Positions 11,169 to 37,157 of a DNA stretch of 64,000 nt are shown in pieces. A program made the position numbers and the translations under genes. Each line of letters opens with the position of its first letter. Position 1 is the stretch's first letter. The stretch covers positions 34,658,001 through 34,722,000 of the forward strand of contig NC_082720.1 in NCBI RefSeq assembly GCF_030144855.1, in the 5' to 3' direction. This stretch comes from Hypanus sabinus. Lineage: Eukaryota. The notes under the pieces were generated by a model that did no database searches, had not been told where the DNA came from, and worked only from the letters and a program-made list of their open reading frames with translations.

Positions 11169-12300
11169 AAGTGGCGCACTATCATCCCAGAATCCTCAAG
11201 GCAATAACTTTGCTGAAGGACCTTCACCAGAGGATTGTAGCAATTCAAGAAAGCAGCTCAGCATCACCTATAAGGGGCATGTGGTGATGGTCAATAAATG
11301 CTACCCTTACAACAATGCCCAGATCCCATAAAAACGTGGTGTACGGATTTCCTGCTGCTCTTTTGGACTTGTTCCTTAATGAGTTGTTCCAGTCTTCAAA
11401 TGTCTGTCTTGAGTTTTGACCTCCAAATAATGTGACCTGAAATTGTAATGGTATTTCCTGTGTCAGAACAGCACTTTCTGTGTCTGTGCTACTGACTTTG
11501 TGCTGAACAAGGCCTGTGATACTATTTGTCCAGTGCTTTCAAACTTCACTAACTGACCTTGCCTCGCCTGGCTACTTCTTTTAAATTCTTTTGGTATTTA
11601 AATAAATGTTTTTCACCTCGTTATTTAAAAGAATCTTCCCAGTAGTGCTTTAAATACTCAAATGCCTGATATTAAAGATAAGTATTTTGCTTCCACTTCA
11701 ATTGATTACCCATGGTCTTCATTTTAAATGATGCCAAAAGAATTCAAAGGAACCCAGAGTCGAAAGGTAAGCCAGCGACACTACCAGGGGCATAACTCGA
11801 TGCCAGCTGCTGTCTCACAGCTTCAGAACTCAGGGTCCCTGAACTCCAGTGCTGCCTATGTGGAGATGGCACCATTGTTCCCATGAAGCCCTTGGTTTCC
11901 ACCCAGTGTCCTGCTTTTTTCTGACCACCCACAGACTCGCTGGCTATTGTAAAACCATGCAATGCAGGTGAAGGTGGCAAAATAAGCTAAGGGGAGTTTT
12001 TGGACATGTAAGGGAATAAAGGAAATAAGGCGAGAGAAGATGGGAGATTGCAAGGTAGCATGGGCCCGATGTGTCAATAGGTTTTCTTGTGCTGTAACAA
12101 GTAAGCAATCAAAATACAACAACAAAATGCAACTCCATGTACAAAGTCAGGCTGTAACTAATAGAATGCAAAGATCGAGTTCATTCTATGTACATTAGAG
12201 AGGACCACACAAAATCATTTATATTATCCAACAGGTTAATGCTGAGAGGTCTACATAGAATATCTTATAGATAGTTACCAAAGAACAATGTTTTTACTCT

Positions 12301-19850: not shown

Positions 19851-20638
19851 GCTCTGCCAAAATGAACTGTCTCACTTGCAATTAAATTTCACGTTCCTCT
19901 TCATTTTTGAATTCTGCACTACTTAACAGAATCATTGCAGATGATTTCTTCAGATGTGGTCATTGTAGATTTATGATCTCCATTGGCTGGTGCATTCCGT
20001 CATCTTCCCTGCACTGTCTACCTTAATGAAGTCGGAGTATTAATTCCTTGATTCTTTAAATAGAAAGCTACACCAGTGCCCTTTTCTCACCAATGTTCCT
20101 ATCTAGCAGGGTAGGAACTTAGTCGATCTCACACTTGGGCAGAACATACTGTAGACAGACATTGTGAGAAGTTAAAATGAGTCATTGTACTGTGGATATC
20201 TCTTTACCTTAATACCTTCATTCAGCCTCTGCCACGATTGAGAATTTTTGTATGCTGTATTCAAACCTTATTCTCCCTTTGTGATAACTTCAGATCAATA
20301 ATTATCAAAATTATTCTTCTGAATCTATCTATGTGTCAATTGCTGTGCATTAATTAGAGTTTAATTACAGACTGGCAGCCAGCCAGTTTCTTCAGACTTT
20401 CTGAAAAGCAGTCCTGGCAAGGGAGCGTAATTATTTCAATTATATTTTTATGGAAATTTGGTTAGCACTTCAAAAAGATTGAAAATTGCACTGAGTATAA
20501 TGTTAGCATTTGAACCATTCAATATAGCGTACTTTAAATTTTAGTAATATAATTTGATTAAAAATACTGGAAATTAAGATGCTACATTTTAACAAAATAA
20601 TTCATTCATTTATTAAATATTATTTCTTTTTATTTCAG

Positions 20639-20664
20639 AGAACCAATTACAAAGAAGAAATCAG
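20639..20664 (+). CDS. SH3PXD2B: SH3PXD2B (Tks4) 26-nt PX-SH3 linker exon, (E)EPITKKKS(G); equivalent to human exon 6
   Basis: tttctttttatttcag|AGAACCAATTACAAAGAAGAAATCAG|gtaaga. Phase 2 in, phase 1 out. Matches the Tks4 linker EEHIGKKKSG and joins in frame to the exon at 37023. Confidence 0.9.
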
Positions 20665-22395
20665 GTAAGAAGCATTTAATTGAATTGATTATGTTATCAA
20701 AATGTTTTATTTGTTTATGAGGGATGTTAGAATATTTTTTTTTGTTTACTCTTGATAATAGTAGTTTACTGAATTATTGTGAATTGGAAAAGTTGGTCTT
20801 AACCAGTTTGACTAGTTTTACCTGCCCTTGAAGATCTTTCTTTGGAATATATTGACAGTATCCTTTGTGTAGCATCAGTATGGGATGCTGAGAAATTCTG
20901 ACGACCAGTCTAAAGAACCGCTCATGGGAATCGAATCTGCTACAAGTGGTAACAGAGTTCCTTATCATCGTGTAAGAATTTCCAATTGAAAAAATCCTGT
21001 TAGTAGCTGTACCATTTATCCATGAGAGTCACACAAGAGTCTAGGGAATCGAAATGAGCAGAGCGTTCTTTTGAAAAATGACAGGGACTGTAGACCATAA
21101 TGGAGCAAAGCAGTAAATTACCTATTAGCCAGAGAAGAGCCTGAAGCCTAAATGACTTTTAAAAGTAAATCAAAGCTTCTGCTATTAATCAGGAAGCACT
21201 CTTTCAAAAGGTTATGTGATCCTGCTCCAGACATTCTAAGCAGACTGTATCTGGATTTCCCGAATAGAAGCAAAGGTCGAGTGACATTATTTACATTGAA
21301 AACTGAGCACGAGACAACAGAAAGAATCAAGAATGGAACAAATGTTCTGAAGAGATTAGAAAAGATCTTTCCTGATATGTTGCACAAAAATACATCAGCT
21401 GTTTACAAGCAAATGGTATTTACGATGGACAACGATTACTAGTTTTGAGAAACATCTTGGTCATCTGTGGATGAGTCATTTCTGCAAATTGATGGCTCAT
21501 ATGATAGTATATAAGTACGAAATCTCTGGAATGACCTAACAAATTACCACACTATTTACATTAGTCTTAATCCATTCTATATACCACAAATAGGATTCTG
21601 TGCAAATGATCTAATTAGTCAAAAGCTAGTGTGATTCATGGGAAACAGCTAGAAAATGTAAGAACTTTGTATTCCCCTTATGTCTCATCTGGGGTTTCAG
21701 TGATTCATTGTTAACCAGCAACTGGAATACTGTTTGCAGGTTTGGTCACAGGGAGTGATGGCATGAAAGAGAAAGCAAAGATGATACAAGAGGAGGTTCC
21801 TGAGGCTGGAGAATAGAATACATGCCAGTTATTAGGCTGGGGCTATATTCTTGACATCAAAGGAGGCTAAAAGGTTTAATGATATATAAAGATGGGGAGT
21901 ACAAACGATGTGAACAGGAAGGGTCTGCTTTCTTAGCAGAGAGATGAATAACTAGGAGTGATGAATTTGTGGTAATTAGCAGACAGATTAATGGGGAACT
22001 AGGATTTTTTTTACACTGAAAGAATTGATGGTCTAGACTTGCAGCTTGATGGAGGGAGAAGGCCTTAAAAGTGTCAGGATGCTCACTTGGAGTGCCAGTG
22101 TCAATGCAATTATTGTCCAGGAACTGGGAGTAGTCTGAATATCACGTTATTTCCACCGTAGATGTAGTAAGCATAATGGCCTTCCCCAGTTGTATAGATT
22201 TTCTGATTCAATGATTTCATTTCTAGTTTCTTCATGGAGTATCCACATGTATTTAATGGTGCTGCTGCCAAGCTAATGGTGCAAAATCGGACTGATGAGA
22301 ATGGAGAGTGACACTTCTTTCTTGCGCTTTGGACGCTGCTGTAGATTTGCACTCAAGTTAAACACGATTATACGTTCAGGCTTTTATTGGACATG

Positions 22396-22536
22396 GCAAC
22401 AAAGGTTATGGGGAGAAGGCTGGGAACTGGGGTTGAGGGGGAGAGAAAAGAAGGACCAGCCATGATTGAATGGCGGAGCGGACTCGATGGGCCAGATGGC
22501 CTAGTTTTGTTCCCATGTCCTATGGTCTTATGGTTT
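22396..22536 (+). mobile_element. CR1 3' end
   Basis: aaaggttatggggagaaggc..gactcgatgggcc..tatggtcttatggt tail. Confidence 0.8.
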
Positions 22537-23871
22537 TAAGTTACCATTGCAGTTTAAATGCACTCTCTGAGCCCACTTCTCAAAATGGTTATGGGCTCCA
22601 AGATTCTTGGAAAAGTGCTAATTTTTTGAAAGAACAAATGATACCAAACTCCTGGGAAAATTTTCAGTGCAAATATCAACCATGTCAGACAACAGAATCT
22701 TTGAAACTAAGAACTAAGATGCAAGGGAGAAAGATGCTCAAATAGGAATGACTATTAACTCAACCGATAATTAATACTTCTCCATTATCATTCATGCTGA
22801 ATGCTGGACTATTTCACAGTGCATACATAATAGATGATGGGAGGCTTAAGATGGACCAATCAAATATGAAAGTAGATCATAGGAAAATCTTGTTATTTTT
22901 TCAAATGACCATTGGAATAATCTAATAAAATATGGTAGTTTAGAACCTGATTGAATATTATTTCATTGGGATGGAACTTGGGTGAAATTCCAAAGATTTT
23001 TTTGAATATATATCATGGTAAGAAAGCAACATGGTGATTGTTGGGGACTGGAATATGAAACTGGAGGGTCAACACAGGTATGATAAGTCCACTCTATGAT
23101 CAGATCACAAGGGTGTGAAGATAAATATTGAGTGATAAACTTCTTTGTGAAAAAGTAACTTTTGCTACAACACACGCACACACACATATATATAAGAAAA
23201 ATAGTTCGGTGTGGTACTTTGGGTGGATTCTGATCTACTTTGGGAAAATACGTAGTATTTATGTTTTGGGTGTTAAAGTGATTAACTACATAGTTCATGG
23301 TGACAGAACAGATAAAGCGCAGGAAAACATTTGAGATTTTGAGACAAACAACAGCAAATAAAGCCAAAGCTTTGCTGTCATCAGTCATTGAAACATTGGT
23401 AAATGTTGATATCAAAGCACATGCAAGTAAAATTGTAATTGATGGAAGTGCAAATCATTATTCAAGTTATATATTCCCATATTTGGTTCTCAAGACTGGT
23501 CATTTGAAACTCTCTCCTGATGTGCTTGGAGCACAATTATGTTGTCACCAGGCGTTAATATTTCCAATGAACAATGCTGTTTTTTTACTTTTGTCAGATC
23601 ATAAAAATTAACATGGTCTAAGCTGCTGATGTGCTTCTGACAAAGTGGCCTTCTTATAATTCATTCATGCAGTATAGACTTTCAAAATTCATTACAACAC
23701 AAAGCAAGCAATGAGTTTTGTATGCTTCTGCTGAATGATTGAATTATACTCATATATAGGGTAAATTATCCAGCATTGCATGTAATTCACTTTCTCAACA
23801 TCTCAATTCAAAACCTTCTTAAAATAATTTCATTTTCCTCACATGTACTTTCATTCATTTTCCTTCATTAG

Positions 23872-23913
23872 GGCTTGCAATAATCCAGAGAACGGCATCG
23901 TTTCTAAAAAGAG
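23872..23913 (+). CDS. SH3PXD2B: 42-nt alternative cassette exon of SH3PXD2B in the PX-SH3 linker (GLAIIQRTASFLKR)
   Basis: ttcattcattttccttcattag|...AAAAGAG|gtatta. Symmetric phase 1 and open in the required frame. Flanked by TGCATG and CTTAAC motifs. Same intron as a Tks5 cassette. Confidence 0.65.
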
Positions 23914-26019
23914 GTATTAGAGAAACTCGCTTGGCCATAACTTAACTGATCCTTAACATTGCTGGATGGTCCTTAACCATTATGATTTTGGACCATGCAG
24001 CTGGCTGATTAGCAGTGGTTGGGGCCAGCTTAATGCTAAATGCGGTGTGATTCATGCATGCTCAGTACCTGTGTAATATTGATTAAAATGGGATTAATTT
24101 GGGACTGATTTTTGTTCTTTTCACTTAATTCAACTTTTTCTTTGATGATACCACTCAAGAAAGTTTCACTTAAAATATGTTTTTGTCCCCCTATATATAG
24201 GTGCACTGTCATTCAAGTAATTGTTCAAATAATCACCGGCTAACCCTTTCATTGGCACAAAGCAATTTGGATATTAAATTTCTTAAATATTTCCCTAAAT
24301 ATGGTTTTGTGGCATATATCAAATTTGGAAATGCTTGCTAGTCTTAATGAACAATTGATCAAAAAAACCTAAATATTATATTAATAAAATGTGACTTTAT
24401 AGCACCTCATCTTAACTGAAGGAAGCAAGTGGCCTATAAGAGGGTTATTCAACAGCAATTTATTTAAAGCTACACTTAATCCAAGCAGGTTCTGAGAACT
24501 GTCTATCTCACTATGTAACCTCTCAGTAATCAATATTATTTTACAGCAATTCTTATTACTTTTCTTGAAAATGTAAACTAATGACTTATTCCACCACTAT
24601 GTCCTTTGTCATTTTCTTGGTGTTGATGGCTTATTCCACTTCGGAACAGATATGTCCTTTTGTCATTTCCTTGGTGCTGTTGATTGGCATCATTTGTGCT
24701 TTGTTTTCTTTTTAAATGCATACATTTTTAAAATGACTTGAAAGTAGATGGAAATACAGAATAATGACAATTATTTATATGTGTGGTATAAAAACAAAAA
24801 ATACTGAAAGAAGTTGGCAAGTCAAGCAGTATTTCTGGAAAGAGAAAGAAAAATAATGCCCTTCTATTGACCAGAAACGTTAACTTCTCTTTCCATGGGC
24901 TCTGCCGGAATTGTTGAGTGTTTCAGTATCTTCTGTTGTTATGTCAGATTTCCAGCACCTGCACTCGTTCGATTTTCAGGCATTTTAATATGTGTGGCGT
25001 TTGATGGAAGCTCTGGAAAATGTTTACAAAATCAGCACTGCAGCAGTAAAGGGATTAATGGTGTTCATCAGGTTTTTTTAAAATAAGATTTTATTAAAAT
25101 ACCATCTAATTTATTTTTCATTTATGAAGTGTTTTAAGATGAGTTTACTAATTAGAAGAAGTACGCTGGGGAAATATGAATACAGCTATGACTATTGCTT
25201 TGTAAATTTCCAAGTGAAATTATAAGTATTATAAAATGATTGCATTGTACACTGTTTGGGATCTTGAGAAAATTCATAGCCTATGTAGAAATTCGTCTTT
25301 GGTCAGTAACATTAAACTGGACCTTGGATATCATGTGTTGTTGCTATCACTGCTATAACACTGTGAATGAGGGATGGATTTCTTAGTGAAGTATAAGATT
25401 GTTTATACTTCAGGATTATGATGCATGATGTGCACTTCTTAAAAATTTAGAATTAAAGCTTATGTGTTGAAATATTCTTGTTAAAATAATATTCAGTAAG
25501 AAGAAGCCATTGCTTGATGCTTTTTATCACAGCAAGTTTTACTTAAAAAGTGTAAATTGACAGTTTTTCCATTTTCTATTCTCTTGGAATACCTGGTTTC
25601 TGCTACAGTATAATACTACATGCATTGAAGGATTTTTATCTATTAGTAAAGTAGCTTATTGTTATCTGTAAGTAAAGTCAGGATCATTACCACTTGCACT
25701 AAGGGGTTGAAGTGTTGCTGAGGCACTCTCCAGCCTTATTTCTTATTCCAAAAGGAATTATTAACCAAACAGCGAATCTTCCTGATCCAAATGTGCTTTG
25801 TACTGGCTTATCTCATGGATTTTCCTCATGACCTGCTGAAGTGCTAATAACTTAAATACTATTTATAACAACATTCAAAAATTGACACTGGATCTGTGGT
25901 CATTTGGCAGGACCCTTAAGGTACTATATGTGAAATGAGCATATCATCAGCCCAGAATGAAGTGATCATTCCACACTCGATGCTAAAGAAACTAGTTTTT
26001 GTGCGCACTGAGGCTGAAC

Positions 26020-27290
26020 TCTTGTCTGTTGATGGTCTCTTTACCTCAGCGTACAAGAGAACATGCCTTTCTAAGATGCAGTCCTTCAGCAACTTGTTCC
26101 GGTGTCACAAAACCATTCTCTGACAATCAAGATCTACAATGAGAACCTTACCAACTTGGATCACTTTATGTATATCAGGAACCATGCCTCAGCAAGGTTA
26201 GACAATAATGATGTAATTCACCACTGTCATCAATGTGCACTTCAACTGCCTGAGGAAAAGGACTGTTCAAAGACCAAGACATAGTAAGAAAGTAGTACAA
26301 CACAGAAACAGGTTATTTGGTATGCCTCATCCATGTTGTGGTGCCCAGCAAGCTCATCCCATTTGCTGACACATGGCCCATATCACTCTCAGCTCTTCCT
26401 ATTCATGGATTTGTCCAAATATTCTAAACTTTGTTATTGTCACTTCTCAACCATTTCTTTGTAGAACTCATTCCATTTAAGAATTCATTTAAGACCACAA
26501 GCCTGGCACCAAGATCATAGACCATTGAAATACAGTAATCCGTATCTGGTATGCCTTGGAGTGGTAGGGTCTCCATTTATTTTCTGATCATTATGGTTCT
26601 TGTAGTCAAACATGGCGAGCAGTCTTAATTCAGTTTATGTTTAGAGTGCGAATGAACTTACAAATTTTAAGGAAACTAAATAAAGAGCTAAGAAACAATG
26701 CTCAGAGGGCAATTAATGCTAAGGGGCGTATAGACAAAAGGTGCTTCTGAAATATCTATCAATTTTATAGATAAGAGAAATTCCCTAGATAGAGATTATT
26801 GTAGACAATAACTGGAGAAGTATTACGAACATCACCTCCAAAAAATTGTCCAAGTACACTGGCAGGTTAGGTGAATCAACATTCTCGGTATTGAGGTACT
26901 GATCCAGCTTAGCTAACTCCATTCTATATCCACACCTGATGCCAAATTCCTGAAAAAATACTCTGTGCTGTTCTCTGTCATGGCAAGCAATTTCCAGCAG
27001 GATAGAAGACATTTCAAGGGAGAATTAGAAGCCTCTTCAAAAAACTGTAAAGTCTTGTCTAACTCATGGGCAGGTCTGACCCATTAGTGCATAAATTATC
27101 TGAAAGGCCTGTGGACACTCTGAACCTTTTCAATAGGAACACAAAGGCGGCAAACTGTAGAAGGAGCATTTAACAAATCCCACCTGCTCACCTATGGCAG
27201 CATCTATATGTCCTGTATAGAACTCATTTGTCACCTCAAATTTTGTAGTCCTAAGATAGAAGCATATCACCCTTGACTTGGAGGGTCAGT
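26020..27290 (+). mobile_element. Decayed, interrupted RTE-clade LINE
   Basis: IKIYNENLTNLDHFMYI..VIHHCHQCA motif and an RTE-like 3' end near 27270. Confidence 0.5.
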
Positions 27291-30092
27291 CCAAGAAAAA
27301 ACCATTTTGAAAATGGTGTTGACTTTTGGAAACCATCATTTACTGTGATCCATGCTCCATAGAATAATTGAGACCAAAATCAATTTTTTTGGCTCACCAT
27401 CCTTTTCTTAAATCTTATCTGTGTAAAATACTTGGGAACATTTAATTTACCTTGAGTACAAAGTATAAACACACATTTTTACCAGAATGGCAAATGAAAA
27501 GTGGCAAAGTGCTAAATCTATTGGATCTAATAATTTTTGTATTAAATAAAACAGTCTGAGATTTGGTAATGTAGAAGTAAAAGTATAATTAAAGTCCCAG
27601 TAATCGTCATTGCCTAGTTTGCATAACTTCTCAATATTTGCCTCATAGCTCTGAAGTTGTTTGCATGCACTGGCTTTTTACAGAAAAATGAGTAATATCT
27701 TTTGAAATTTAAGGAACAGAGGACTACAGTAAATGCTGCAATACATATTTCATAATGACTGTTTTTGGCTACAAAGTGAATTTTAGTCAAGTTCAAACAC
27801 GAGATTTCTCTTCATGTACTGCCCTTTCAAGAAGAATGTCATAAATTGCAAAGCTATTTACATATGACCTTGTTATATCTTTAATGTAACGAGAAGGTAT
27901 TTCAGTGGCACTGTTCGTACAGTTATTTTGTGCCTTGGGGTTGGGTGAGCATTTATATGTTGACAGAGTGTTGGGCTGGTTCAGTTTTTTTCTGCAAAGG
28001 AAAGGATAGTGATGTGATGGTTCAGTGTTGAGTGCATTGTCAAAGAAAATAGATTAATTGTCATGTTCGTATAATAAACTCATACAAACTGGTTTCTAGC
28101 AGTCCCAAGTCTTCTCTGCATTATGAGCTCTTTCCCCAAAAGCTGCTGAGTATTTCCAGGAATCCTTGCTTATCACTTCCGAACCATCTAATTTAGTATC
28201 AAGTCAGATACACGCTGTTCAGAAATGAGTCCTTTGTCTTTACTTTCAGGCTCTGATACGACTCATAGGAGATGTCCTGACCACTCATTCACTCTCCTGT
28301 CTCAATCCCCAGGGTACTGTGCTCCAGCCATTTATTTTAATTATTTTTGCATTATTTTTCTCTGCTCTCAGCTAATAGCCCACATCGATCTTCCGCTGCA
28401 CATTCCAAGACATCCAGTCTTGGATTCAAAGACTTCATCTGACTGCCAGATATGGTGAATTGGGCACTAACTTTCTAAGCTATTCTTTTAATTTCAGCGA
28501 CATAATTTTTATTCCAGCTAACTGGTGAGATTCACATCCATTTTAACTTGGTGTGATCTCAACATGTGAATAACTTAAAACTGAGAAAATTTTTATCTGC
28601 AAGTATAGAAAAACCAGATTTCATCCAATCTGCTTTGTGATTTTTCTGACTGCTGGGTAAGGCGAGTACATTGAAGTTAAATGCATAACCCATTTGCCTG
28701 TGGCGACAAGACTGGGAGAAATGCATCTCCTTGCTATGTGGAGAAGAGTGTGGGGAAATTTAATCAGGGTATTCAAAGACAGACATTGTTTCTTGGCAAA
28801 GTGATAGGTGAGCAAAGGACAGAGATTTACACTACATCATGTATTCAATGTGCTGGCATAAGGTACCTGTGTATCAGTTGATCCCTTAGTAGCCTAGTAC
28901 AAGTGCAAAGATGACTTGAGTGGATATAACTTCCCTGCATTGCCGTTAGATATTTTCCCACATGTTTTAATTTTAAAATTATACTAGGGTTGGATGGATG
29001 ATCATGCTTCAGGTTTCTTGATTGAGAGCAGATGTACGTTATTTTTCCACAGAATACACGCTGCCTGTTCTGTGACTCTTACCTGGGTAAATGCTGGGTA
29101 GCAATTTTTATCAGTGCCCACTTCAGTTTTCCCTTAAGATGATAAATTGTGCAGCCTGTTTAAAGTAAACATGTATTAAATTTTGCCAAGCATATGGGAG
29201 TAAGACTTATTGTACAAAAGTGCATTTAAATCAGGTTTACTAGTGTCCCCCCCAAGCTTGCAAGGAATCTCTGTTCCTAAGCAATGTGGAACGAATACAA
29301 AATCTATTGGGGTTTATTATTGGTAAATTGGTGTGCTATTCTCTTTGGTGTCCCTCTAAACAGAAATGAATTTTAGGTACTGAGCACAGTGGAACTTCAA
29401 GTGATTGTTTGCCAGTCCACATGGTCTTGCAGTGCTCAGATGAATGATATCACCTGCTGACTTCATCAGGTTAAAGATCTTACAGTGTGATGAGGGAAAT
29501 CCACAGTGAGAATGTATCAAGTCCCAATTCCATACAGATTAATTTTGGTTTTCTAAATTTTAAGTCTGTCAATTTTTACTGAGTTTTTTTTCCCCTGTGA
29601 TAATGACATATCTTTATTTTTGCTTCATTTTGATATTAAGGTGACACTATTATATGAAATGGTATAAGCAACAACCATTGACTATATATTATCAAAAGAG
29701 GTTTTCCTTTTTTCTGTCACACATCTTTTCTGAATATGTTCTGAACTAGTGAATAAAGGACCATACAACTTGCTTCTGTTTCAGCATTCTGTAGTGGCAG
29801 TAGGAAATGTTATTTGAACAGAGGTAGTTTAAAATTAAGGTACTTCTAATTACTCTCCATTGGCAGTATTACAATCACAAAACATTTTGTTAATTGGAAA
29901 ACTGGCATGCATTATTATTACATTTCAAAAGAATATGCCCAATTTCTTTGTTCCCCGGATCAGAGAATAGTCACTACCACAAATAGAGCAGTTTTGAAGA
30001 AAAGGAGGAGATAACCAAACTCAAGGTTGAATTTTGTGTCTTGAGCATTTTCAGTAAACATTTGATTCTATATCTGATCTTTCTTCTTCACA

Positions 30093-30660
30093 GATTAAAG
30101 TTCAAAGTAAATTTATTACCAAAATATATACATATACATCATCATATACTACCCTGAGATTCATTTTCTTGCAGACCTTCACAGCAAATGAAAAGAAACA
30201 CAATAAAATCGATGAAGAACCACATATAACAAAGTGTAGGAAAACTACCAACGTGCACAAGACAATAAATAGTGCAAATACAAAAAGGGGGGGGGGAGAA
30301 ATAATATTCATAAATAAATAATTAATACATATTAAGAATGTAAGTTAAAGTGTCCTTGAAAATGTGTCCATAGTTTGTGGAATTAGTTCAGTGTTGGGGT
30401 GAATGAAGTTGTTCACTGATGGTTGAGGAGTAATAATTGTCCCTGAACCTGGTAGTGTGGGATTTAAGAATCCTGTGCCTCCTTCTTGATTACAGCAGCA
30501 AGAAGAGAACATAGACTGGATGGTGGGGGTCGTTGATGATGAATGCTGCTGTCCTATAGCAGCACCACGTTTTGGAGGGCTTTACCTGTGATGGAGTGGA
30601 CTGTTTCCACTATATTTTGTAGGGTTTTCTGTTCAAGGATATTGGTATTTCCACACTTGT
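30093..30660 (-). mobile_element. Rex-Babar-like LINE 3' end
   Basis: LQNIVETVHSITGKAL motif and 3' tail (aaagttcaaagtaaatttatt on +). Confidence 0.65.
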
Positions 30661-31109
30661 AACTAATTGATTCATTTTTCACGTTGTCTTTTTCTTGCAT
30701 TTGTTCTGTTGGTCTTGATAGTATTACACTAAATATCTCCACTTATTTGCATTATTAAACTTACAGTGAGAAATTTGAAATTCTGTGGCATTAGTTTCAA
30801 TTCTTACAGCTCAGCAAATTGAATCTTAAGTGGAGTGCTGGATGAGCTAAGCCCTTAAAGAATAAGAACTGGCTTTTCTCTGTTGTTTATCATAATAAAC
30901 TAATAATGATTTGATTTTCTGTGTTATTCATAAATAGTGCTTGTAATCAGAGATTAGTTTTTTTAGTTTGGAAGTTACTGTGTTTGCACAGGGAGACCTA
31001 TTTCATGATACCAGGGGAATACATAATGTCAAGAGAAACAAAAAGCTTTCATTTGCATGATGGATCTTCCAGCAGTTTTAAGTGTCAGAATAACTCCAGG
31101 CTGTATCTA

Positions 31110-31196
31110 ATGAAAAGTCTCAGCCCGAAACGTTGACTGTGCTTCTCCCTATAGATGCTGCTTAGCCTGCTGTGTTCTATCAGCATTTTGTGTGTG
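31110..31196 (+). mobile_element. 87-bp Penelope-like terminal repeat insertion with 12-bp TSD
   Basis: aggctgtatcta duplicated at 31098-31109 and 31197-31208. The insert begins inside the hammerhead core (atgaaaagtctcagcccgaaacgttgac). Confidence 0.85.
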
Positions 31197-31313
31197 AGGC
31201 TGTATCTAGACCTATTTTGTCACCTCGAGTAATAAACTTTTGTTCAATTACTACAATTTCCTATATGTAGTGTTAACCATAAGGCCATATAACGTGCATG
31301 TTAAATATGATTA

Positions 31314-32846
31314 CAGTGCCTATAAAAAGTATTCACCCCCCCCCCCCCCCCCAATGTTTTACAACGTTGAATCACAGTGGTTTTAATTTGGCTTTTTTGA
31401 CACTGATCAACAGAAAAAGACCCTTTCATGTCAAAGTGAAAACAGATCTCTACAAAGTGATCTAAATCAATTGCAAATATAAAACACAAAATGATTGGTT
31501 GCAGAAGTATTCGCCCCTATCAAGTCAGTATGTAGTAGATGCACCTGTGGCAGCAATTACAGCCTTGAGTCTGTGTGAGTTGGTCTCTTATCAGCTTTGC
31601 ACATCTGGACACTGAAATTGTTCCACATTCTTCTTTACAAAATTGCTCATGCTTTGTCAACTTGCATGGGGATCATGAGTGAACAGCCCTTTTCAATTCC
31701 AGCAACAAATTCTCAATTGCATTGAGGTCTGGTCTCTGACTTTGCCACTCCATGACATGAACTTTGTTGTTTTAAGCCTTTCCTGTGTAGCTTTGGGTTT
31801 ATGCTTGGGGTCATTGTCGTGCTGAAAAACTAATCTTCTCCCAAGTTGCGGTTTTCTTGCAGACTGCATCAGGTTTTCCTCCAGGATTTCCTTGTATTTG
31901 CTGCATTCATTTTACCCTCTGCCTTCACACACCTTCCTGGGCCTGCTGCAGTGAAGCATTCCCACAGCATGATGCAGCCACCACCGTGCTTCACGGTAGG
32001 GATGGTGTATGGTGTTTGGTGTTTGGCTTACACCAAACATAGCGTTTAGTCTGATGGCCAAAAAGCTCATTTAGGTTTCATCAGACCATAGAACCTTCTT
32101 TCAGCTGACTTCAGAGTCTCCACACACCTTCTGGCAAACTAACTGAGATTTCATGTGAGTTTTTTTTTTAACAACAATGGCTTTCTCTTTGGCCCTCTCC
32201 CATAAAGCTGTGACCGGTGAAGTACCCGGGAACCAGTTGTTCTATGTGCAGATTCTCCCATCTCAGCCACTGAAGCTTGTAACTCCTCCGGAGTTTTCAT
32301 AGGTCTCTTGGTGGCTTCCCTCACTATTTCCCTTCTTGCATGGTCACTCAGTTTTTGAAGACAGCCTGCTCTAGGCAGATTTACTGCTCTGCCATGTTAT
32401 TTCCATTTCTTGATGATTGACATAACTGTACTCCATGGGATATTCAGTGACTTGAAGTCTTCTTTTATCCATCTCCTGACTTGTGCCAGGATACTGACTC
32501 ACCAGCAGTTGGACCCTTCTGATACAGGAGTATTTATACTACAATCAATTGAAACACCTTGACTGCACACAGGTCCCCAAAACAAATCTCCATTTAATTA
32601 ATTATGTGACTTTTAAAACCAGTTGGCTGCACTGGTGATGATTTGGTGTGTTATAGTAAAGGGAGGGGGTGAATACTTAATGCAATCAATCATTTTGAGT
32701 TTTATATTTGTAATTAATTTAGATCACTTTGTAGAGACGTTCTCACTTTGACACAAAAGAGTCTTTTTTGTTGATCAGTGTTGTAAAACAATAAAACATG
32801 AAAATTTCTGGGGGGAGGGCAGTGTTAACGCTTTTTATAGGTATTG
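31314..32846 (-). mobile_element. Tc1-like DNA transposon, IR/DR type, decayed transposase
   Basis: TA|CAGTGCCTATAAAAAG ... CTTTTTATAGGTATTG|TA. ~200-bp inverted repeats with internal aagtattc(a/g)cccc repeats. The - strand reads [23 protein letters not shown]. Confidence 0.92.
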
Positions 32847-32855
32847 TATATTCTG

Positions 32856-33280
32856 GCCCTTCTCCGTGGATTGTCATCTTGTCGCGGTGGAGAAGCTTGT
32901 GTGGTTCTGAGATCCCGAGGGTGATGCCTCTGGAGCTATGCTCCTGGTAGGGTCACCCATGGCAGTAAGATCGAGGGTGAGGTCCCTGACAAGGAACAAT
33001 CCAACCAAGACCTCAACGGTGGAACAGGTGGAGGTAGTTACTTCAAACTCAATGTCTGTGAAGGCGGATGAAGGCTGCAACAAATCCATCAGCTCCAATC
33101 GTCGTGGTTTCCATGCCATTGGAATCAGTGGGTTGATTTGTGAAATAGTGTGTACTTCTTGGAGTGCAACATTGAGAACATGTTAAACAAATACACGCAC
33201 AGGCGTCTTTGCTCTGTGGGCCACTTCTTCAGAACAAAGACCATCATCCTCGACCTCAAGGGATAGCCACGGTGCCGATG
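32856..33280 (+). mobile_element. Bipartite non-autonomous RTE-clade element (Rex3/BovB-like 5' UTR joined to an RTE 3' end)
   Basis: cttgtcgcggtggagaagcttg and cctggtagggtcacccatggca 5' motifs; 3' end catcatcctcgacctcaagggatagcc; no RT ORF. Confidence 0.7.
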
Positions 33281-35492
33281 ATTCTGCCAATGATTTTAGA
33301 GAACGATTTCTTAAAAACTGGACTAGTTTTAACTTTAATTGTTACAATTATAAATAGAAAATAGTTGCAGCACTCAGTACTGTTTTTTCTCACGTTCTCA
33401 GGAAGCGATGAGTATCTGAATTTTGGGGATGACCTTATGCAGCAGAGGTCTTGCAGGATCAATTGTCCCAAATGTCAGAGCGTATGAATGCTGAACGGTG
33501 TGGTAGGGCAGTCATGGACATAGGGCTGGATTTTGCCAATGGTTCTGAATGAAGCCGCTGGCTTTTAAATGGTAGTATGTTTCTCAGTGTTAGATTTGTT
33601 AACACTGTGCAGTTTTTGCATGTGATCAATTTTAATTGTGCTTCCTTGTTGCATCTCAGTGAAATGCCAAGTTGACATTGCATTGTCCATCTAGCCTTAA
33701 TGTTATGACACTTCATTACAATTGATATTATAAATATATTGATATAATTGATACTTTTACTTACATCACTTCAGGAGCCAAATTAAATTGAATAATTTGG
33801 GATTAAAATCATATTTAACCAGACTTGGTAAGGATATTAGATTTCCTTTCCTAAAGGGCATAAGTGAAGCAGATGGATTTTTTTGAGGAAGTCGTAGTTG
33901 TATATTAACTATTTGTGAATAGTTAATTGCTCTGTGTGACAAAATGTACTGAACTGCCAAATTAGCCTGTATAGTCATGTATAAGTTAATGGACAAGAAA
34001 GTATTTTATCCAACTCCAACATGGTCAAAACATTGAACCATTTGGCATGCAGCCAATGTTTCTTTACCAGCAAGTACAACCTCCAACTGTGGTACCCATT
34101 ATTTTTAAGATGTGTGATTGCAGGGCATAGGGTCAAACACTGGAATTTGGGACAGGGAAGTTCTTTTTTGTGTGGCACACATCAAATGGAGCAAATTACG
34201 TTATAGAGATTAATCTAAATAGTGGAGGTACTAGTTAAATCTTATGGCTCAAATTCTACAAGATTGTGATAAAAATGAATCAGTGGAAGAAAAGTAGGTG
34301 AAATAATTTAGATAGGATAACTGGTTTAGGAAGTAACCCAGTAAAGCACTATTAAAACAGGCCTGATCATAATAGATTATTGAAGGAAGTGGAATTATCT
34401 TATCTAAGGATTTAAATATATTTACTTATTTATTTGTTTGTTTATTTTTTAACATCAATGTTTTGCAACGTGTCTTTCCAAAGAAAGTAAGAGCATCCCA
34501 CAAGATTACCAAAGACTCGCTAGTCTAATTAAAGTCTAATTAAAAATTCTTATTTAAAAATGGATCAAACATAACCAACATAGATTTATATAAAAGATGG
34601 TTATATATTTGACTAATTAACATTCAAGGAAATAAATAATTAGACAAAATGCAGTGAGTAAGATTACCATAGCTTTTCAAACGGTATTTGAAAAATAAGG
34701 GGCTTATTAACCTTGTATTAAGACAAATACAGATTTAAAATTGACTGAAGGGCAGAAATACAAAGGATAGCTACCATCTTATTTTGGAATTAAAACATGA
34801 ATACCATCGACTAAAATGAGCGTGGGGACACAAAGGTTTTCAGATTATTGACAGATTTGGTTCACAAAGCAAATTTTAACATGTGGAATGTGCTGTCTGC
34901 TCAAATGACATCTAACCAATCCCCTTTGAAAAGTTATTTGCTTAGAATATGCAACACAGAAACAGGCAACTCTGTCCAATGGCTAACACTGGCATTTATG
35001 TCCTACTTAAAGCCATTTGTAGCTGTGGGAGAAGCACCGAATAATGGATTTAAATGAATAATTCTTGCAGAGAGCCAGCATAAGGCTGAATATTTTCCCA
35101 GGACATTATTATTTTATCAATTATCAGTACAAAAATAAGAAACATAATAAGACACTTTCAAGCAATTTCATGAGGACATAAGCAAATTGATAATTGAGCA
35201 ATCTTAATGTGGGGAAAATGTGAGGTTACCTGTTGGGAGATGGATATATACTTTTTCTGGCTGGTATTTGTAGCTTGGCAGCAAAACCTGGATTGCATTT
35301 ACGATTTTGATAGGATTGAAGGACACTGATCCGGAGGCAGCTAAAAAGGAAAATTAATTTGGTTTGGTTTAAAATTTTATTTTTTGGTAGTAATTTAGGG
35401 TTTCTTTAAAGTACAAAATATTTTAAATTAAAATATGTACCTCACATAGCTTTTAAATGTGTCTGAAATTTAGAAATACTTATACGTTGTCT

Positions 35493-35615
35493 TAAAGAAG
35501 GGTCTCAGTCCAAAATGTCGACTGTTTATTCATCTCTATAGATGCTGCCTGACCTGCTGAGTTCCTCCAGCATTTTGTGTGTGTTGCTTTGGATTTCCAG
35601 CATCTGCGGACTTTT
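35493..35615 (+). mobile_element. Penelope-like terminal repeat
   Basis: gaagggtctcagtccaaaatgtcgactg..gatgctgcctgacctgctgagttcctccagcattttgtgtgtg. Confidence 0.8.
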
Positions 35616-37022
35616 GCATGCTTATGCACAGTGCGCCACATTATTAGGTACCTCCTGTATCTAATAAAGTGGCCACTGAGTGTATGGCAATGGTCTTCTG
35701 CTACCGTAGCCATTCACTTCAAGGTTCGATGGTCTCAAAGATGAATATTAAGGACATGAATAAGATGCAACCAGTTTACTGAGATAAAACATGGATGAGA
35801 AACCAGAAGAGCTGGACTCTTCACTAGAGAACAGGAAACTAATATTGAACAAAGGGGTTCATACTGAAATTTGCTTTGGAAAGTAATTAGAAACTTGTAT
35901 CACAGGGTAACAAATTGAGACATTATTAGTGCCATTACACAGGAAGAAAGAGAGGTGGGAGTATTTGTTAAGCAGCTTCAAGTACCTTATCAAAAAAATG
36001 ATTGAAGTAAATAATTTTAAAGAAGGATTGGATAATAAGCAAAGGTAAGGCAGAAGTATTGAAGTAAGTGGATAGCCCTTTTAAGGTATTCATTGAAAAA
36101 TAGAAAATTCAGTTATTTTTATCAACAAAGAGCAAGCAAGGCTAATTCCTGAGATTATAACAGGCTGTTTTGTTTTAAGGCATTAGTATGTGTTGGAAGT
36201 CACTGTATAAATGGCTAGAAAGTGCTTTTTCAATGTATAATTTGCCATATTGACACTATAAATCAGAATGATCTCTGAGAATAATATAGTGGTCCTTTTG
36301 TTGTCAAAACCAATTTGCTACTAGTCTATGGGTGGAAAAGCTTTGAATTTATTTGCATATGCAAATAAGGATTGCCTTGAATCCACCCAGTGCCGAGTGC
36401 TGAGATCAGAAGAACCAAGGTTACTGGCAATGCAGACAACCCTAAATTCCAACCCTCTTTCTTTTGCTGCCATCAGTTCAAAGCTCTCCAGGTTCATTCA
36501 ATATAAGCTTCATTATCTGTCCCTTTCCAATCAAGAATAATTGTCACCGGCCAGATTGACGAAGACAACTTTTCAGATTGTGAGTCATGACTGATATCTC
36601 AAAAACAGGATATACAAAAGCTGAGAATGATATAGTGGTAAAGTCCTTTTGCTGTCAAAGTCAATTTGTAACTCATTGTAATTATAGTAAAAGAAATGTA
36701 TTTTTTAAATCTGCTGGGATTCTGTACATAGTACCTTTGGATTATAGTAATTTTCTTCAAGATAACAAGGTTACAATTCTGTGGTATAGTTGTTTATTTT
36801 GAGGATTGATATCTACAGCAAGTCAACAACTCAACTGAAGACTGATCAATTTAACCGTGTCTGCTTCAGAGTCAACTGTAGGACTATCCTTGTGTGCTAA
36901 GAAAGAGATCAGGATTGTGGTTGCTTGGAGTACAGTGAAACTCCATCAATTTGTTGTTGAGTGTCCCATCATTCCCTTTATTATTAGTGTCACTCTCTTA
37001 CATTGGATCTTTTTGTTTGCAG

Positions 37023-37157
37023 GTGGAGATGGAACATCTGCAGACCAGTTTTTTCTGGATCAGTATGTGGCAGTGACCAATTATGACAAACAGGAAAGCA
37101 CTGAGATTAGTCTGTATCAAGGCCAAGTCGTGGAAGTAATAGAGAAAAATGAATCTG
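37023..37157 (+). CDS. SH3PXD2B: SH3PXD2B exon, N-terminal half of SH3 domain 1 ([44 protein letters not shown])
   Basis: ttttgtttgcag acceptor and G|gtaagt donor; 135 nt, phase 1/1. Resembles Tks4 [46 protein letters not shown]. Confidence 0.96.

Follow-up and report, generated by a model that had tools for sequence, protein, structure and literature searches.

TKS4, encoded by SH3PXD2B, organises podosomes and invadopodia; its loss leads to Frank-ter Haar syndrome, and its PX domain is thought to be restrained by intramolecular contacts. The related scaffold TKS5 (SH3PXD2A) carries an alternatively spliced exon 7 at the site corresponding to the one analysed here (PMC4178035), a small cassette that sits, as in TKS4, between a short polybasic exon 6 and the first SH3-1 exon. 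The peptide found at this site in TKS5 (protein P0020), VWLSSWAESPKKDVT, has 15 residues as against 12-14 in TKS4, a low hydrophobic moment and no recognisable sequence similarity to the TKS4 insert; a common origin of the two cassettes is possible. The human TKS4 isoforms TKS4L, TKS4b, TKS4c and TKS4d include none with an insert between PX and SH3-1, and TKS4c contains a 28-residue cassette (exon 8a) between SH3-1 and SH3-2 (PMC13486968). An ortholog of that exon 8a lies at 50088-50171 of the DNA described below. The nearest described counterpart is the RefSeq annotation of the stingray itself, where the Hypanus sabinus X1/X2 pair XP_059846180.1 and XP_059846181.1 has the identical insert at the identical site, X2 being exactly 14 residues shorter; the Scyliorhinus canicula pair XP_038651468.1 and XP_038651469.1 shows the same 14-residue difference. 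This annotation describes the same protein and is silent on regulation, flank conservation and function, and our literature searches, including those pairing SH3PXD2B with microexon or RBFOX, found no paper discussing the TKS4 cassette. The exon is thus already in public gene annotation, and its earlier call from raw sequence was correct without being a new discovery.

The window, by which we mean the whole 64,000-nucleotide stretch of Hypanus sabinus DNA analysed, contains this cassette at 23872-23913, where it belongs to SH3PXD2B as a genuine, optionally included exon. The features on which the analysis turns, all on the forward strand, are the following.

20639-20664, +: constitutive micro-exon of 26 nt, encoding EPITKKKS plus the first base of a split Gly codon, with AG and GT present at its borders.
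23777-23782, +: upstream TGCATG, unconserved.
23849-23871, +: pyrimidine tract with UCAU repeats, and the acceptor AG.
23872-23913, +: 42-nt cassette exon, phase 1-1, adding GLAIIQRTASFLKR; seen in annotation, in orthologs and as an RNA joint.
23914-23936, +: weak donor GAG/GTATTA and conserved proximal intronic element (..CTCGCTTGGCC).
23941-23977, +: three CTTAAC copies, two of them as TCCTTAAC; ray-specific among the species aligned.
24015-24075, +: conserved downstream intronic block with TGCATG at 24055-24060, +142 from the exon; candidate RBFOX-type enhancer.
37023-37157, +: downstream exon, encoding the linker end and the first half of SH3-1, its peptide exact in Hypanus X1.

Assignment to the host gene is secured by the neighbouring exons, since each of the five exon peptides tested from the window has an exact match in Hypanus sabinus isoform X1, the peptide of exon 20639-20664 is exact in both Hypanus and Hemitrygon SH3PXD2B, and that of 37023-37157, used as a search query, retrieved TKS4 and TKS5 proteins. 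The 26-nt KKKS exon is the counterpart of the 29-nt exon 6 of TKS5. Motif search and tblastn found no PX exons within the window, which places them upstream of position 1. The cassette lies on the coding strand of the intron that separates the KKKS micro-exon from the first SH3-1 exon, 3.2 kb after the former as compared with 0.7-1 kb at the other loci compared. It is bordered by AG at 23870-23871 and GT at 23914-23915, its 42 nt are a multiple of three, and translation with the leftover G of the upstream exon gives G-LAIIQRTASFLKR-G and continues in frame into 37023. The sequence-only reading, which had proposed a real exon in this phase directly after the KKKS patch adjoining the PX domain of a Tks4-type gene, is borne out on each of these points, and the motif positions it gave (TGCATG at 23777 and 24055; CTTAAC at 23941, 23952 and 23972) were all correct on rechecking. 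As to the surroundings, which it had described as looking transposon-free, no piece of 23300-24500 recurs elsewhere within the 64-kb window. A very high-copy repeat, at about 22334-22595, lies 1.3 kb upstream of the cassette region.

Both forms of the protein are widely annotated. RefSeq X1 models carry GLAIIQRTASFLKR exactly in four ray and three shark species and with a single A-to-T change in five more sharks, and X2 or X3 isoforms that omit the cassette peptide, 14 residues shorter, are annotated in nine elasmobranch species; skipping isoforms are annotated also in Amia, Scatophagus and Archocentrus, in agreement with the alternative use that had been predicted. A 12-residue ortholog occupies the same site in sturgeon, gar, bichir, many teleosts, lizards, a snake, an alligator and birds, amounting to 128 bony-vertebrate proteins, sturgeon P0001 is one protein with such an insert, and 151 of the 169 TKS4-type proteins retrieved have an insert at the cassette site. 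Zebrafish and chicken have the cassette. A lizard protein (P0233) aligned to the window by tblastn with 83% identity at 23880-23915, and the ray segment IIQRTASFLKR differs from the bird IIQRTASFLQR at just one of its 11 positions. The bony-vertebrate cassettes (teleost GIVERATTFLKR, gar GFVERAASFLKR, bird GFIQRTASFLQR) share with the ray the intron, the phase, the R-x-x-S/T-F-L-x-R core, the acceptor tract, the weak donor and the proximal element; the elasmobranch cassette differs in six extra bases, hence two more residues (G-L-A-I-I as against G-Φ-Φ in bony vertebrates), an extension common to all 23 elasmobranch inclusion isoforms retrieved.

Spliced contigs support the upstream joint. In contigs of runs X7 (organism B), X21 and X23 (both organism I), position 20664 is joined to 23872 with removal of a 3207-nt GT..AG intron; these organisms are related to, and not provably, the window's own individual, and the runs are RNA-like, their RNA nature being guessed. 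X21 and X23 carry a synonymous A20663T change. Coverage reached 5 of 30 bins in X7 and X21 (exon 6, the cassette and a repeat) and 14 of 30 in X23, some intron included, and the DNA-like run X13 covered all 30. The 70-nt run search relied on two index words only, and the half-share seen in X21 and X23 served merely as a lead; Logan contigs give junctions rather than inclusion levels. Of the two junctions proposed for checking, 20664-23872 was therefore seen, and 23913-37023, like the skipping junction 20664-37023, is deduced from isoforms annotated in this species or in sister species.

The exon and its flanks are, by alignment, conserved across jawed vertebrates. Divergence of run X13 from the window is 0.7% over 23814-24400 as against 2.7% elsewhere (Fisher P = 0.001), and index words of the exon are held by more organisms than those of the neighbouring intron; together with the cross-species alignments, these values place the flanks far above neutral intron, as the earlier reading required of a regulated exon. 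Sturgeon has almost the same acceptor tract as the ray (CTTTCATTCATTTTCCTTCATYAG), gar and tarpon have a close version, and Astyanax and ostrich keep part of it. The acceptor region had been called rich in YCAY, and it is: six copies fall in the 100 nt upstream of the exon against an intron mean of 1.7, within the top 1.6% of windows, with 8 in sturgeon, 4 in gar, 6 in Astyanax and 2 in ostrich, although part of this density is a 10-nt tandem (TTTCATTCAT x2.1) and YCAY is confounded with an ordinary pyrimidine tract. On the donor side the cassette scores 2.7 bits against 10.6-11.1 for the neighbouring exons (11.1 for exon 20639-20664). The sequence GAG/GTAGTAAC..CTTGCTTGGCC is common to sturgeon, gar, tarpon and Astyanax and looser in ostrich, and among the intronic pieces the proximal element CTYGCTTGGCC is conserved most widely, reaching ostrich. 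A hairpin between exon and downstream intron (GAGAGC with GCUCUC; RNAalifold) was rejected: it is weak (-7.1 kcal/mol), its covariation term is unfavourable, just one pair is compensatory, and in the ray the stem is broken.

(U)GCAUG is the recognition motif of RBFOX proteins, and the two TGCATG copies flagged in the sequence-only reading fared differently. The copy at 24055 lies in a conserved block in which sturgeon (+187), gar (+185) and tarpon (+183) also have TGCATG and Astyanax (+122) has GCATG, the GCATG core being the best conserved run of the block in five fish lineages; the copy at 23777 is unconserved and probably a chance occurrence, as judged from alignment. In the one bird examined, ostrich, no GCATG was present within 600 nt downstream. 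The weak donor and the UGCAUG 140-190 nt downstream, in a block kept across distant species, liken this exon to RBFOX-dependent cassette exons with a conserved downstream UGCAUG, a likeness that here comes from sequence; at +142 the ray copy falls within the roughly 300 nt downstream taken as the limit for (U)GCAUG of such exons.

Several other readings of the exon and its regulation have to be weighed against these data. A chance pseudo-exon, that is, an open AG..GT segment of a long intron that is never spliced in, has virtually no probability left. The same intron holds 682 frame-preserving open AG..GT segments, among which the cassette ranks just seventh by a crude splice-site score, and with its weak donor this makes sequence insufficient to prove the exon, the proof lying in homology and RNA; nor is TGCATG enriched across the window (41 found, 52 expected). 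Against this stand a peptide present in annotated isoforms of 12 elasmobranch species (five with the A-to-T change), orthologs up to birds, a spliced junction in three RNA-like runs and flank conservation over more than 400 million years, and it is the orthologs, the elasmobranch isoforms and the junction that refute the pseudo-exon. It is also very unlikely that the exon is effectively constitutive in this ray, with the X2 models representing rare mis-splicing or annotation noise and no regulated switch. All three RNA-like runs do show the inclusion junction, in a compared stretch unable to reveal skipping, but skipping is annotated independently in the elasmobranchs and ray-finned fishes named above, a conserved weak donor and conserved intronic blocks, both seen here, are usual features of regulated exons, and a mammal-type locus is without the exon, a loss from which it follows that the skipped form is functional.

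Regulation mainly by factors other than RBFOX, whether NOVA or PTBP acting on the UCAU-rich tract or an unknown factor acting on CTYGCTTGGCC, with GCAUG kept for another reason, is a serious if rather unlikely alternative. It draws on the upstream YCAY density, on UCAU repeats retained in ray, sturgeon, gar, tarpon and Astyanax, on the breadth of conservation of the proximal element and on the ostrich that has no downstream GCATG; what speaks against it is that YCAY is inseparable from an ordinary pyrimidine tract and that the GCATG core is the best kept run of its own block. The three CTTAAC copies had been likened to QKI-type elements, and it is very unlikely that they serve as such a response element and promote inclusion in muscle or glia. 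They do form a distinctive cluster, the sole group of three within 40 nt among 16 plus-strand copies in the 64 kb (three copies within 37 nt), and each contains a UAAC half-site, but CTTAAC differs from the QKI core, ACUAAY; between -500 and +600 around the ray exon there is no ACTAAY, and the aligned positions of sturgeon, gar, Astyanax and ostrich lack CTTAAC.

The inserted peptide itself is conserved. The consensus of 128 inserts is G-Φ-Φ-x-R-x-x-S/T-F-L-x-R, which the ray peptide fits, with R5 kept in 97%, S/T8 in 95%, F9 in 93%, L10 in 97% and R12 in 97% of these orthologs; the RxxS site singled out earlier is accordingly a lasting feature, R-x-x-S/T being retained in about 95% of the 128. 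The amphipathic helix proposed alongside it was not predicted. In an AlphaFold2 model of Hemitrygon residues 1-232 (40 sequences), residues 133-166 have pLDDT 26-42 and no secondary structure, and the helical hydrophobic moment of 0.56-0.72 is only moderately above that of shuffles, 6-9% of which exceed it (P ~0.06-0.09). The helix is unproven because the model puts the insert in a low-confidence region, and the insert is apparently part of a disordered linker between PX and SH3-1.

The cassette seems, from the sequences compared, to be missing from mammals. One mammal-type locus (L005) had no cassette-like peptide and no trace of the exon in its 7-kb intron; its best 60-nt match to the ostrich exon was 31/60, as against 27 in a shorter control. 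A look-alike at 12119-12178 of that locus (GFQKIRTSCLGP) was faint and indistinguishable from chance. The hit lists consist of representatives of 90% clusters, within which an insert-bearing mammal isoform could hide, so that the absence of mammals from them is weak evidence.

Taken together, the exon exists and occurs in RNA, annotation gives both isoforms for many species, and we hold with high confidence that it is the stingray ortholog of an ancient SH3PXD2B cassette that is spliced in or skipped and that inserts a motif into the linker. Inclusion would yield an X1-type protein, in which Φ-Φ-x-R-x-x-S/T-F-L-x-R enters the flexible linker that runs from the lipid-binding PX domain and its KKKS patch to the first SH3 domain, and skipping an X2-type protein 14 residues shorter. 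With slightly better than even confidence, the weak donor may make inclusion dependent on the downstream (U)GCAUG block, so that inclusion would be favoured in RBFOX-expressing cells, for example muscle, heart, neurons and mesenchymal cells. More tentatively, and a little short of an even chance, the insert may act as a short linear motif, rather than a stable helix, that tunes PX membrane binding or the autoinhibited TKS4 fold. Judging from the consensus, the motif would most likely be either a docking site or a phosphosite for basophilic kinases, with R at -3 and hydrophobic residues at -5 and +1. A more speculative and on balance improbable extension is that the cassette is one half of an alternative-exon pair older than the TKS4/TKS5 duplication, descended from a small optional exon between PX and SH3-1 of the ancestral vertebrate Tks gene. 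In TKS4 this exon would have persisted as an R-x-x-S/T-F-L switch, gated by a kinase and governed by a conserved GCAUG enhancer, that controls the scaffold's membrane recruitment or autoinhibition, and mammalian TKS4 would later have lost it; if this were true, the mammalian loss would explain the absence of the cassette from the invadosome literature.

In summary, a real exon of 42 nt was recognised within a 16-kb intron by reading the raw sequence, and only part of the nearby motifs merited the weight they had been given. The apparent absence of the cassette from mammals would explain why it has been overlooked. An insert of 12-14 residues that adjoins the PX domain, conserved together with its splicing signals since before the split between sharks and bony vertebrates, is a natural candidate for a membrane-targeting switch in TKS4.

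The cassette exon of SH3PXD2B (TKS4) lies between the exon encoding the polybasic KKKS patch and the first SH3-1 exon. A sequence-only reading had proposed it as a tissue-regulated exon, and on re-reading of the window its coordinates proved exact, as did the positions of the surrounding motifs (TGCATG at 23777 and 24055; CTTAAC at 23941, 23952 and 23972).

20639-20664, + strand: upstream exon, codes EPITKKKS with one G left over
23872-23913, + strand: cassette exon, an open 42-nt segment with AG at 23870-71 and GT at 23914-15
37023-37157, + strand: downstream exon, opens with GT and continues into the first half of the SH3 domain
50088-50171: 84-nt segment coding ..WSLPRHFGRRRTLGDLY.., matching the 28-residue TKS4c exon 8a insert

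With the cassette included, the reading frame runs on unbroken from the KKKS exon into the SH3-1 exon. From sequence statistics alone the case for the exon is weak: a crude splice-site score places it 7th among 682 frame-preserving open AG..GT segments of the 16.4-kb intron, its donor reaches 2.7 bits compared with 10.6-11.1 bits for the neighbouring exons' donors, and a motif count found no TGCATG enrichment across the window.

Protein comparison provides a broader view of the exon. Querying 1.84 billion protein representatives with the SH3-1 exon recovered a full-length sturgeon SH3PXD2B (P0001) with GLVKRATSILKR at exactly the cassette site, and two word-index searches placed an insert there in 151 of approximately 170 TKS4-type proteins, including GIVERATTFLKR in teleosts, GFVERAASFLKR in gar, GFVQRASSFLKR in bichir, GLIQRTASFLLR in lizards and GFIQRTASFLQR or GIIQRTASFLQR in birds. 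The consensus is G-Φ-Φ-x-R-x-x-S/T-F-L-x-R. Conservation reaches 95% for S/T8 and lies between 93 and 97% for R5, F9, L10 and R12; the RxxS site claimed from the ray sequence is thus kept, as R-x-x-S/T, across orthologous inserts. The window peptide occurs letter for letter in RefSeq isoform X1 of rays (Hemitrygon, Hypanus, two Mobula species and Pristis) and sharks (two Chiloscyllium species and Hemiscyllium), and with one A-to-T change in Mustelus, two Scyliorhinus species, Carcharodon and Cetorhinus; Hypanus sabinus X1 matches 5/5 window exon peptides tested, exactly. An X2 or X3 isoform lacking the insert, exactly 14 residues shorter, accompanies X1 in nine of these elasmobranch species. 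The cassette measures 42 nt in elasmobranchs and 36 nt in bony vertebrates (five loci, L001-L004 and L006), the gap being a 6-base indel at 23878-23883, just past the first codons, and the two extra residues are present in 23/23 retrieved shark and ray inclusion isoforms. Because RefSeq models of many species contain the exon, it is already known as annotation and its novelty is low. Our literature search found no paper on it.

Four sequencing runs of related organisms were mapped on 20500-24400, a stretch out of reach of the 23913|37023 and skipped junctions. X7 (organism B) and X21 and X23 (organism I) were judged RNA by guess, and their contigs speak to the presence of the included form rather than its level. 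One contig in each joins 20664 to 23872 over a 3207-nt GT..AG intron, the junction expected of the proposed exon; together with the annotated isoforms with (X1) and without (X2/X3) the insert, this join upholds the proposal of a real alternative exon. A20663T at the join in X21 and X23 is a synonymous change of a serine codon (TCA to TCT). Coverage is limited to 5/30 bins in X7 and X21 (KKKS exon, cassette and a high-copy repeat), extends to 14/30 in X23, some intron included, and is complete (30/30) in the DNA-like X13. For X21 and X23, the two bins at the cassette have a depth compatible with coverage ending at 23913; in X7 the depth exceeds what the single joined contig accounts for, so a second X7 contig probably covers the cassette. 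The interspersed repeat (~22334-22595) is very high-copy, with a summed contig depth of 10^3-10^5 in 4/4 runs and many loose contig ends at 22386, 22457 and 22503; as it is seen in RNA-like runs too, it is transcribed or part of many transcripts.

The predicted conservation of the flanks was also observed. X13 diverges from the window by 0.7% over 23814-24400, against 2.7% in the rest of the stretch (Fisher P = 0.001) and 3.3% in the piece directly upstream (Fisher P = 0.0003). Index words of the exon region are held by more organisms than those of neighbouring intron, and the two words sampled hint at conservation past the closest relatives. X13, X14 and X15 (organisms D, E and F) hold both words, sampled from a 70-nt exon region, and are not among the holders of a 9.9-kb intronic stretch. 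Alignment of the ray exon and flanks with the loci of gar, sturgeon, ostrich, Astyanax and tarpon revealed four common features reaching distant species: the acceptor tract CTTTCATTCATTTTCCTTCATYAG, which barely differs between ray and sturgeon; a weak donor reading GAG|GTAGTA (GAG|GTATTA in ray); a proximal element, CTYGCTTGGCC, ~15-25 nt inside the intron; and a ~45-nt downstream block in all five fish lineages. The best conserved run of this block, TCATGCATGG, lies at +142 in ray and at +183 to +187 in sturgeon, gar and tarpon, and Astyanax keeps GCATG at +122. Ostrich retains the first three features but lacks GCATG in the 600 nt downstream. A second TGCATG occurs at +345 in sturgeon, +359 in gar and +307 in tarpon, ~120-175 nt past the conserved copy, and ray has none at that distance.

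A conserved weak donor plus conserved intronic blocks typically marks a regulated cassette, and (U)GCAUG is the recognition motif of the RBFOX family. Deep conservation of the downstream TGCATG (24055) supports the proposed RBFOX-type element; the upstream copy (23777) is not conserved, and its proposed role does not hold. The most economical reading, which we hold to be somewhat the likelier one, is that inclusion would require an activator, an RBFOX family member, on the downstream (U)GCAUG. Factors on the UCAU tract or the proximal element possibly contribute to control as well. The YCAY richness invoked for NOVA is real, with six copies in the 100 nt upstream ranking among the top 1.6% of windows, and it is conserved in part, but is inseparable from a pyrimidine tract with a 10-nt tandem. 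The CTTAAC triplet is a genuine local oddity of ray; its QKI-type interpretation was rejected, as the copies are absent from the other aligned species and a motif search found no ACUAAY core near the cassette.

At the protein level, an AlphaFold2 model of Hemitrygon X1 residues 1-232 folds the PX and SH3 domains and leaves the linker containing the insert unstructured (pLDDT 26-42, residues 133-166). The helical hydrophobic moment of the insert, 0.56-0.72, is moderately high and is reached or exceeded by 6-9% of shuffles; given both results, the proposed amphipathic helix, which might form on binding, is possible but unproven. The invariant positions, namely the S/T (0), the F-L directly after it (+1, +2), R at -3 and hydrophobics at -5 or -6, agree with the general site preference of basophilic CAMK-group kinases. 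The insert adjoins the KKKS patch, and a passage of PMC13486968, citing Mero et al., reports TKS4 in a closed conformation involving the PX domain. On these three grounds we tentatively favor an insert that would act as a phospho-regulated short linear motif tuning membrane binding or autoinhibition.

Unlike ray TKS4, none of the human isoforms in a 2026 survey (TKS4L, TKS4b, TKS4c and TKS4d; PMC13486968) has an insert between PX and SH3-1. The 7-kb intron of the mammal-type locus L005 contains no recognisable remnant, and no mammal is among the best 120 matches of an insert-containing lizard query, which is weak evidence because the matches are cluster representatives; the cassette thus appears to be missing from mammals. 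A faint look-alike at L005 12119-12178 (acceptor-like TTCAG|GGTTT.., internal CTTGGCC, peptide GFQKIRTSCLGP), 0.9 kb upstream of the SH3-1 exon and not close to the KKKS exon, is not distinguishable from chance. In the paralog TKS5 the site of the cassette is occupied by exon 7, which is alternatively spliced (PMC4178035); its peptide VWLSSWAESPKKDVT (P0020) shows no similarity to the TKS4 insert, so a common origin stays hypothetical. Judged by its peptide, 50088-50171 is another conserved cassette, this one between the SH3-1 and SH3-2 domains, because the human TKS4c exon 8a insert (PMC13486968) and that of a turkey protein (P0279) match it. The peptide occurs in 0/33 retrieved elasmobranch isoforms. 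Further downstream, 59354-61780 is GC-rich (55-59% vs ~38% elsewhere) and carries three long ORFs on the + strand (323, 283 and 149 residues), which resemble a retrotransposon polyprotein.

In summary, the initial observation is confirmed and its interpretation partly supported. For a cassette already present in annotation the interest is modest, and rests on how deeply the exon is conserved, on the conservation of its splicing signals and on mammals apparently lacking it.
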